Shown in pieces: positions 2,953 to 6,659 of a DNA stretch of 6,880 nt. The first letter of the stretch is position 1. The number at the start of each line of letters is the position of its first letter. A program made the translations under genes and the position numbers. A model generated the notes under the pieces. The model saw only the letters and a program-made list of their open reading frames with translations, was not told the origin of the DNA and ran no database searches. This DNA comes from Octopus sinensis. Taxonomy: Eukaryota. The stretch is from contig NW_021829209.1 of the NCBI RefSeq assembly GCF_006345805.1, positions 1 through 6,880 of the forward strand. The letters run 5' to 3'.

Positions 2953-3165
2953 TTTGCTGATTACGTATTCCAACTAGATTTTGTTTGTTTGTCTTATGTT
3001 GGCTTACATTTTAAGAAAGAATATTTGCCATTGAAGAAGAAGAAAAACGGAGAGAGGAAAAAAAAACATTTTGAAAATTTGTTTGAATGTTGTAACATCG
3101 AATGCAGATTAGTGAGTAATATTGGAAGTGGAGGAAAGGTTTTAATAAAACTGGTGATGCTCATA

Positions 3166-3393
<228 letters not shown>

Positions 3394-3458: not shown

Positions 3459-3516
3459 AATAATAATAATAATAATAATAATAAAATAATAATAATAATA
3501 ATAATATAATAATAAT
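3459..3516. repeat. (TAA)n microsatellite abutting the Helentron 3' end
   Basis: Direct reading. Confidence 0.95.
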
Positions 3517-3890
3517 AACAAGCGCACTCAGATAGCGCAAACCTCCGCCAAAGTAATGCCAATGTCCTCTCAACGATTAACCAGAGATGATTTTTAAAAT
3601 AAGAATATCTGAAATAAACTCGACTCCTCTCACAAACGAGAATACTAAAAATGAACCGGACCGCTCTCAAAAATTAAGTAAAAAAAAAACAGGAAAAATA
3701 ATCCAGAATCCTTGTCCGGTACCGGATCGATCCCAGAACCTAATCAGTTTGTGCCAGTTACAAGGCCGAACATCCCTGAAAGTGGCATTCGAATCTATCC
3801 AGCGGATCTTGAGATATCTTGGCCACGGACAAACAAACAAAGAAACAGTGACCGTAGACAATATCTCCGCCTTCGCTATGGCGGAGATAA
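3517..3890 (-). mobile_element. Full-length non-autonomous Helentron (DINE-1/HINE-like rolling-circle element), 374 bp
   Basis: On the minus strand: the 5' end TT-atctccgcca is folded into a 10-bp hairpin (tatctccgcc 3862-3871 / ggcggagata 3880-3889), followed by a short (GTTT)n/GTCC tract (3826-3845). At the 3' end come a subTIR (acctccgcca 3541-3550, 9/10 match to the 5' one), a small stem-loop GCGCT-atctg-AGTGC (3524-3538) and a ...CTTGTT end. No TSD; T-rich ends. This order matches the published DINE-1/HINE architecture. Confidence 0.82.

Positions 3891-4754: not shown

Positions 4755-4785
<31 letters not shown>
4755..4785. repeat. (TA)n microsatellite
   Basis: Direct reading. Confidence 0.97.
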
Positions 4786-4787
<2 letters not shown>

Positions 4788-4789
<2 letters not shown>

Positions 4790-4846
4790 CCACATTAAAT
4801 GTTCATACATCACTAGGAGAGTGCTGTATGAACATTTAATGTGGTT
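4788..4846. repeat. Perfect 22-bp inverted repeat with 15-nt spacer (59-nt hairpin)
   Basis: aaccacattaaatgttcataca (4788-4809) is the exact reverse complement of tgtatgaacatttaatgtggtt (4825-4846). The spacer adds cact/agtg pairs. Confidence 0.95.

Positions 4847-5006: not shown

Positions 5007-5071
<65 letters not shown>
5007..5071. repeat. (AT)32 microsatellite
   Basis: Direct reading. Confidence 0.97.
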
Positions 5072-5257: not shown

Positions 5258-5581
5258 CCCAAATCTATCTTAAATGTTACCCCGAATCAAAGACAGGAAG
5301 AATAGCTAATTCCATTCTCCGTAGTCGCACGGAATCTCATTATTCCGCAACCTCGCCAAGGAAGTGACAGGTTAAATGCTGCTTTTTTAAATATCGCTAA
5401 ATACATTCTATGAAATGTTGTTGTTGCCATGTGTTATTGGAATTCCCAATGAATAGAAGACGAAAATATTGGCACGAAACTGTTTTCTCCTTATCGAGTT
5501 ACTGATTTTAATGCAAGAAATATTTATCTGTATATGCAGTGCCATAAACGCCTTCTTCCTGTCCGTCACAAACGTTTGCTG

Positions 5582-5802
5582 AGCTCCATGAGGCCATCGC
5601 CTTAAGTTAGCTATTTGATACACAAACTGATACACAAACTGTATCCATATAACCTACGCTGCATTGAAAAGGGGCAATACCCCGAAACGCGTCTGTAGCT
5701 GCCGGTCAAGTAGTGTGGAGCGACTGACCTCCCTTGTTCGAAGGTTATATGGATACAGTTTGTGTATCAAATAGCTAACTTAAGCGATGGCCTCATGGAG
5801 CT
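5582..5802 (+). mobile_element. Fold-back element, probably a Penelope-like/retrozyme pLTR with an inverted 5'-truncated copy
   Basis: The right arm 5742-5802 (61 bp) is the reverse complement of the left arm 5582-5655 with zero substitutions. The left arm carries one extra C (5600/5601) and a 12-bp tandem duplication gatacacaaact (5617-5628, 5629-5640). The 86-bp spacer holds a hammerhead fold. Confidence 0.75.
5658..5699 (+). ncRNA. Minimal type I hammerhead ribozyme (U3-A8 core variant)
   Basis: Stem I gcugca 5658-5663 / uguagc 5694-5699 (5 WC + 1 GU); core UUGAAAA 5664-5670; stem II gggg 5671-5674 / cccc 5680-5683 with loop caaua; GAA 5684-5686; palindromic stem III acgcgu 5687-5692; GUC triplet 5691-5693, so cleavage is predicted between 5693 and 5694. 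Confidence 0.8.
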
Positions 5803-5921
5803 AATAAGCGGACAGCTTTATTCTTATTTATAAGAATGCCATATTAGTATGGCGATAACTATTATTTTCCGGAACGCTGCCGTTGTTCTCTTTAGAGAGA
5901 CTTAGTAATTTTAATATTTCT

Positions 5922-5985
5922 ATTATATATATATATAATATATATATATATTATATTATATTAGATATATTATATATATATATTT
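5922..5985. repeat. Degenerate (TA)n / AT-rich low-complexity tract
   Basis: Direct reading. Confidence 0.9.
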
Positions 5986-6082: not shown

Positions 6083-6342
6083 ATTTTAGAGACAGAACCA
6101 CCTTCAACTCAATCAACACTGAAAGGTTTTATACCCGACCACTCCATAAAATGTCAAAAATTAAATCTTATACTAACTATATCTATTCTGAATCTTGTAT
6201 TTTCCGTTCATAAGATTACATGTGTTTCACGATTCAGAATAGGTATAGTTAGTATAAGATTTCATTTTTACCATTTTAGGAGTGGTTGGGTATAAAATCT
6301 TTCGGTGTTGATTTGAGTTAAAGGTGGTTCTGTCTCTAAAAT
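6083..6342. repeat. Long inverted repeat (fold-back/MITE-like): 112-bp arms, 36-bp spacer
   Basis: 6083-6194 vs the reverse complement of 6231-6342: 8 substitutions and 2 single-base indels (~91%). No TSD recognised. Confidence 0.92.
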
Positions 6343-6354
6343 AACTTTTATGTT

Positions 6355-6372
6355 TATATATATATATATATA

Positions 6373-6439
<67 letters not shown>
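6355..6439. repeat. (TA)n microsatellite, one interruption
   Basis: Direct reading. Confidence 0.97.

Positions 6440-6442
<3 letters not shown>

Positions 6443-6624: not shown

Positions 6625-6659
<35 letters not shown>

Follow-up and report, generated by a model that had tools for sequence, protein, structure and literature searches.

A 221-nt fold-back at positions 5582–5802 carries a type I hammerhead-like motif in its spacer, and both of its arms end outward in the same terminal nucleotide. It lies in the window analysed here, a 6,880-nt stretch of Octopus sinensis DNA. The combination of core, helices and palindrome in the motif is not expected by chance. From this anatomy and the published literature, we judge on balance that the unit is probably a dead-on-arrival retrotransposition product of a non-coding, hammerhead-bearing lineage, either of Penelope-like elements (PLEs) or of non-LTR retrozymes. 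The most economical reading of its geometry is a head-to-head twin insertion of two 5'-truncated copies, one of 147 nt and one of 61 nt, with their 3' ends facing outward.

The fold-back and its surroundings

The left arm measures 74 nt and the right arm 61 nt. The original prediction had described 61-bp arms free of substitutions around an 86-bp spacer, and both points were borne out: repeat finding and global alignment of the right arm against the reverse complement of the left found 0 substitutions, and the spacer has the length given. This lack of substitutions means that the event was recent or that the arms have been homogenised. The arms differ only in that the left one has an additional C at 5600/5601 and a tandem repeat of a 12-nt unit; this unit, TGATACACAAAC, is present in a single copy in the right arm, at 5758–5769. 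The prediction had called these an insertion and a duplication in the left arm, which is right as to the indels themselves and leaves their direction ambiguous, loss from the right arm fitting a single locus equally well. All 61 of the 61 pairs between the arms are Watson-Crick pairs, with G.U pairs at 0, which points to copying at the DNA level and not to selection for an RNA helix.

Both arms have outer ends at the same nucleotide, ...GGAGCT facing outward, in agreement with the two outward 3' ends that had been predicted, while their inner ends differ (one belongs to a 147-nt copy, the other to a 61-nt copy). At the inner junction the arms could be extended by 3 nt (5656–5658 with 5739–5741) at the cost of one mismatch, and a CG dinucleotide makes the exact boundary ambiguous. 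The AGCT noted earlier at both ends of the unit is indeed there, and it is ambiguous as a mark, being a palindromic tetranucleotide that fits an inverted repeat and a direct repeat equally. Folded as RNA, positions 5575–5810 reach −125 kcal/mol, which corresponds to a z-score of −14.9 relative to shuffled sequences. The 61-bp duplex foreseen for a transcript is found as to the number of its Watson-Crick pairs, but not as an uninterrupted helix: bulges of 1 nt and 12 nt divide it, and its longest continuous run is ∼28–29 bp.

The arm geometry leads us to read the longer copy as the 3' end of a retroelement, either truncated on its 5' side or of unit length. Its hammerhead-like motif lies 103–144 nt from the presumed 3' end; with a single copy, no pLTR can be defined. 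The linker between motif and right arm folds into a weak local stem (GGUCA...UGACC), and no similarity to it was found elsewhere in the window. Positions of all parts of the unit are collected in Table 1.

Table 1. Parts of the fold-back and of its hammerhead-like motif, in window coordinates
Feature	Position	Strand	Remarks
Left arm	5582..5655	-	Inverted copy of the element's terminal 61 nt; minus strand ends ...GGAGCT at 5582 (alignment)
12-nt tandem repeat, TGATACACAAAC x2	5616-5627 and 5628-5639	.	Units 100% identical
Spacer	5656-5741		86 nt between arms
Longer copy (putative), 147 nt	5656..5802	+	Hammerhead-like motif, 42-nt linker and 61-nt 3' terminus; suggested by arm geometry
Type I hammerhead-like motif	5658..5699	+	Descriptor scan, MFE fold
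Helix I	5658-5663 pairs with 5694-5699		6 bp, one G.U
Core box UUGAAAA	5664-5670		U3 = 5664, A8 = 5669
Helix II, GGGG/CCCC	5671-5674 and 5680-5683		4 bp, loop CAAUA, G10.1-C11.1 first
GAAA	5684-5687
Helix III palindrome ACGCGU	5687-5692		A15.1...U16.1
C17	5693		Predicted cleavage site 5693/5694
Linker	5700..5741	+	Unique, 42 nt, between hammerhead and right arm
Right arm	5742..5802	+	61-nt 3' terminus of longer copy, ends ...GGAGCT at 5802

Searches for further copies were made within the window and in large sequence collections. BLASTN of the element against the rest of the window returned no second copy. A 23-mer from the hammerhead gave 0 exact-pattern matches in metagenome, prokaryote-genome and viral collections. 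A 20-mer from the arm gave four matches, all on prokaryotic or metagenomic contigs; each extends over only 20–23 nt, and we rejected them as chance matches. At the protein level, ten ORFs of the window were absent from a collection of 15 billion proteins, and a stop-free 47-aa plus-strand frame across the spacer had 0 phmmer matches among 1.84 billion representatives.

The window is AT-rich, and a large share of it is covered by (AAT)n, (ATT)n, (ACT)n, (GAT)n and (TA)n microsatellites (1–175, 760–880, 2222–2290, 2720–2930, 3160–3370, 4755–4787, 5007–5070, 5925–5985, 6355–6440 and 6625–6655). A (TA)n tract lies ∼120 bp downstream of the fold-back, the insertion itself being outside any such tract; (TA)n is a preferred target of some PLE clades (PMC8557442). 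Two further inverted repeats were noted. The larger, at 6083–6342, is an older MITE-like fold-back of ∼260 bp with a 30-nt centre; it lacks a ribozyme motif, abuts a (TA)n tract and has nested arms at 6083–6112/6313–6342 (97%), 6111–6159/6265–6313 (84%) and 6147–6197/6228–6278 (90%). The smaller, a hairpin at 4788–4846, follows directly on a (TA)n tract; its loop has 5 nt, and its 27-nt arms are 96% complementary. It matches several miRNA models, but only below threshold (mir-759, for example, scores 34 bits where the gathering score is 100). Among direct repeats, two adjacent SINE-like copies (1501–1628 and 1685–1811, ∼184 bp from start to start) are 92–97% identical, and ARAGORN found no tRNA gene at them. 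This unit and the microsatellite load would suit a cephalopod-like host. A 129-nt dispersed direct repeat (882–1010 and 3508–3636, 83% identity) adjoins an (AAT)n/(ATT)n microsatellite at each copy, and may be a retroposon end with a microsatellite tail. Finally, GTTCGAA at 5736–5742, which straddles the junction of spacer and right arm, resembles a Pol III B box. ARAGORN found no tRNA in the window, and neither a properly spaced A box nor a tRNA-like fold accompanies it; the resemblance is probably a coincidence.

The hammerhead-like motif

Read on the plus strand, the motif is GCUGCA-UUGAAAA-GGGG-CAAUA-CCCC-GAAA-CGCG-U-C / UGUAGC, with the order and spacing of a type I hammerhead. Two invariant bases of the CUGANGA core are changed, C3 to U and G8 to A, and all other core positions match; in place of the invariant C3 ... 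G8 core we find U3 U4 G5 A6 A7 A8 A9 ... GAA A15.1 ... U16.1 C17. U3 and A8 are able to form a Watson-Crick pair, and by their sequence the two changes are mutually compensatory. In the active hammerhead structure, C3 is joined to G8 by Watson-Crick pairing (PMC3884650). Covariation to U3-A8 occurs naturally in Cercyon PLE hammerheads, and ∼1,300 matches to it are reported from Schistosoma mansoni (PMC4209133). Helices I and II are present in the MFE folds both of the isolated motif and of the whole fold-back, with pair probabilities of 0.6–0.74 in the full fold-back. Loop 2 (CAAUA) and the UAC directly 5' of helix I presumably resemble their counterparts in the S. mansoni hammerhead.

At E≤10, no hammerhead family of Rfam release 15 matched the window as a whole or a 131-nt region around the motif (5630–5760). 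The only Rfam matches in the window were sub-threshold miRNA models, on AT repeats and on the 4788–4846 hairpin. A full-text literature search with strings from the hammerhead matched only unrelated primers. The original prediction of a complete minimal type I hammerhead is therefore right in position and topology; the cleavage site that it placed at 5693/5694 is also the right one for such a motif, with C17 at 5693. It goes too far in "complete", given the UUGAAAA core in place of CUGANGA and the lack of an Rfam match. "Minimal" does not apply either: a short helix III is kept here, whereas a min-HHR, in the terms of PMC4209133, lacks helix III.

How often such a motif would arise by chance was estimated with a strict descriptor. 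It comprised a C3-G8 or U3-A8 core, an optional bulge, a helix II that has 4 bp or more, includes G10.1-C11.1 and carries a 3–8-nt loop, GAAA, a palindromic insert of 0–6 nt followed by U and H, and helix I of at least 5 bp. The descriptor was composed after the motif had been seen, so the resulting chance figures are somewhat generous. Positions 5658–5699 were its only match in the window on either strand, and there were 0 matches in 2 × 20 Mb of first-order Markov sequence. Its analytic expectation is 2–5e-6 per window, or ∼1–2 matches per 2.7-Gb genome; a much looser version of the descriptor gave ∼1e-3 matches per window. Real hammerheads number hundreds to thousands per metazoan genome (PMC4209133), and 235 Rfam hammerhead_1 loci are recorded for the giant squid genome (PMC6962438). 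Because real counts so far exceed the expected chance matches, a true hammerhead-derived sequence is far likelier here than a chance match.

A chance resemblance in the loop of an unrelated hairpin is accordingly very improbable. It would account for a core that is off consensus at two invariant positions and for the failure of Rfam to match, it gains something from a descriptor drawn up after the fact, and a scan of many windows could find one of the one or two matches expected per 2.7-Gb genome. The expectation for any one window is nonetheless minute, and the two deviations are compensatory and equal a published natural PLE variant. Real hammerheads are also marked outside the core by G10.1-C11.1, by their helix sizes, and by a palindromic 15.2-16.2 with loop 3 (PMC4209133). 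These marks occur together here, in the form of G10.1-C11.1, helices I and II of the canonical 6 bp and 4 bp, and a palindromic helix III with its loop 3.

Helix III is the short element of the motif. It consists of A15.1-U16.1 and C15.2-G16.2 around a 2-nt loop, and its pair probability in the monomer is 0. Two co-folded copies are instead predicted to form a double hammerhead, in which ACGCGU makes a 6-bp intermolecular helix III and helix I pairs in trans; its energy is −34.7 kcal/mol, compared with 2 × −14.3 kcal/mol for the monomers. Such a dimer mechanism has been described for newt, axolotl and PLE hammerheads. Small palindromic helices III are known from PLE hammerheads in Drosophila, rotifer, shrimp and mosquito variants (Cervera & de la Pena 2014, PMC4209133); dimeric PLE hammerheads cleave poorly in vitro (PMC4209133). 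Both the descriptor scan and BLASTN within the window indicate that the locus has one hammerhead only. Since helix III would need a second copy, a single hammerhead is present and dimeric PLE hammerheads cleave weakly, the folding model makes cis self-cleavage at this locus unlikely, with little or none expected. The proposal that the loop opens itself by self-cleavage was thus the weakest part of the original prediction, and we regard a self-opening dsRNA for Dicer or ADAR as unsupported speculation.

Probable origin of the unit

Copies that share a fixed 3' end but stop at different points on the 5' side are the hallmark of target-primed reverse transcription. In the twin insertion that we favour, each target strand at a single staggered break would have primed one reverse-transcribed copy of the same RNA 3' end, and the two copies would lie head to head. 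This would leave a 3' terminus, ...GGAGCT, next to either flank, and the 5'-truncated ends would meet at 5655/5656, possibly through CG microhomology. The longer copy would happen to retain the hammerhead, and the shorter would not; slippage would later have set the arms apart by a 1-nt indel and a 12-nt repeat unit. The hammerhead would be a relic of the parent element's processing signal, a double hammerhead formed between two tandem copies through the ACGCGU palindrome. Any action of the hairpin as dsRNA would be an incidental effect of the insertion geometry.

Several published observations fit this geometry. PLEs show a pattern in which an inverted 5'-truncated copy lies next to the upstream end of the element (PMC8557442, which cites Evgen'ev & Arkhipova 2005 for the inverted truncated upstream copy). 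Here a 61-nt inverted copy with the same terminus lies directly upstream of the 147-nt copy. As in the PLE insertions described by Craig et al. 2021 (PMC8557442), the two copies stand head to head with a shared 3' terminus outward, and their 5' truncation points differ; unlike those insertions, the copies are tiny (147 + 61 nt), and no ORF, tandem pLTR or 30–40-bp "tail" is recognisable. Dual hammerheads on opposite strands, 100–700 bp apart, are known in S. mansoni (PMC4209133), and Penelope elements are present in cephalopod genomes (PMC6962438). No long ORF and no RT or GIY-YIG remnant was found in the window, and no Pfam domain in its 10 longest non-repetitive ORFs. Such an absence is what a severely 5'-truncated copy would lead one to expect, and the copy could still derive from a PLE. 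Apart from the ambiguous AGCT, the unit shows no target-site duplication.

With the hammerheads of PLEs (PMC4209133) the motif shares the type I topology, the exchange of C3-G8 for U3-A8, G10.1-C11.1, and a palindromic 15.2-16.2 that implies action as a dimer. It also resembles them in its site, in the non-coding terminal segment of a retroelement-like unit, and in their occurrence as single dispersed motifs and opposite-strand pairs. It differs in its helices, helix II having 6–8 bp in PLE min-HHRs and 4 bp here, and helix I 2–5 bp there and 6 bp here. A further difference is that no PLE ORF or pLTR was seen here, and the motif is known from one copy.

In helix sizes the motif is closer to metazoan non-LTR retrozymes (Cervera & de la Pena 2020, PMC7229834; Li et al. 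2026), which likewise have a helix I of 6 bp, a helix II of 4 bp and a short (1–2-bp) helix III capped by a palindromic loop. They too are small and non-coding, with dimer-dependent cleavage in some lineages and solo monomers common. Retrozymes, however, are tandem repeats that need at least two consecutive units for activity, whereas here there is one hammerhead and no array; their units measure 170–400 nt against 147 nt here, their core is canonical and ours is not, and a perfect 61-bp inverted arm is no feature of theirs. As a retrozyme, the unit would be at most a solo monomer. Animal retrozymes are reported to derive from PLE pLTRs, solo monomers being common among them (bioRxiv 10.64898/2026.07.22.740005). 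The predicted PLE- or retrozyme-type insertion thus agrees with the anatomy and the literature, but lacks the tandem unit that the definition of a retrozyme calls for.

The same anatomy can be read at the DNA level, as a MITE or fold-back DNA transposon with terminal inverted repeats of ∼57–61 bp and a 4-bp AGCT duplication, inside which a hammerhead fragment is carried or was captured. MITEs and fold-back elements are likewise short and non-coding, with long perfect terminal inverted repeats (perfect here over 61 bp) and possibly a short target-site duplication. AGCT at both ends is compatible with such a duplication, but a self-complementary AGCT is expected at 1 in 16 inverted-repeat tips whatever their origin, so that it is uninformative and the duplication ambiguous. 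No other direct repeat flanks the unit, nor does one appear when its ends are moved inward by 2 bp (5584–5800; AG against CT). The MITE-like fold-back of ∼260 bp and the small hairpin elsewhere in the window, both without ribozymes, indicate that DNA-level fold-backs or MITEs are common at the locus. A transposon origin would nevertheless leave a PLE- or retrozyme-type hammerhead inside it without a reason, and arm differences due to slippage only would fit any young inverted duplication equally. To our knowledge, hammerhead motifs are not a feature of MITEs. We consider this origin unlikely.

Somewhat more doubtful still is a two-step history in which a solo hammerhead repeat, a retrozyme monomer or PLE fragment at 5656–5802, was inserted first and its last 61 bp were later copied locally at the DNA level in inverted orientation, by template switching during replication or by fold-back repair, to give the left arm. 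The slippage-type indels, in arms otherwise identical, do suggest replication-based events at the site, and the absent target-site duplication and an inner-junction microhomology of just 2 nt (CG) suit this history as well. Yet the duplicated segment ends exactly at the presumed element terminus, which would here be a coincidence and is expected of two 3'-end-primed copies. A template-switch inverted duplication usually puts the copy next to its source, and this copy sits 86 nt away, beyond a unique segment. It is also conceivable, though only as a slim prospect, that the fold-back did not arise by accident at insertion, and that hairpins with the hammerhead in the apical loop make up an element family which natively transposes in this form; cleavage by dimers in trans between transcripts would then lift the constraint of the loop and free long, almost perfect dsRNA for Dicer or ADAR. 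If so, it would be a ribozyme-gated source of dsRNA, possibly relevant to the heavy A-to-I editing of cephalopods.

Three other routes to a palindrome were considered and rejected. Self-priming of a cDNA hairpin would have given a small loop flanked by two copies of all 147 nt. With L1-style twin priming from a single template, an upstream segment would have been inverted, and the same 61 nt would not occur twice. A palindrome created as a long-read assembly artefact would have a different scale.

Significance

Earlier work has described each of the features involved, namely the U3-A8 variant, the palindromic helix III and the inverted truncated partner, and the locus opens no new question. 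It would gain greater weight only if copies across the genome showed the hairpin and its loop hammerhead to be a conserved unit, or if small-RNA or editing data showed the arms to be processed. The practical use of the finding is in repeat annotation of the host, and as a reminder that Rfam models miss the U3-A8 core variant. If the twin-insertion reading is true, the fold-back adds another young insertion to those of non-autonomous retroelements with hammerheads, and as a genomic repeat it is of an ordinary kind. It would then show the U3-A8 core variant outside flatworms, and would present a miniature version of the head-to-head geometry of PLE insertions.
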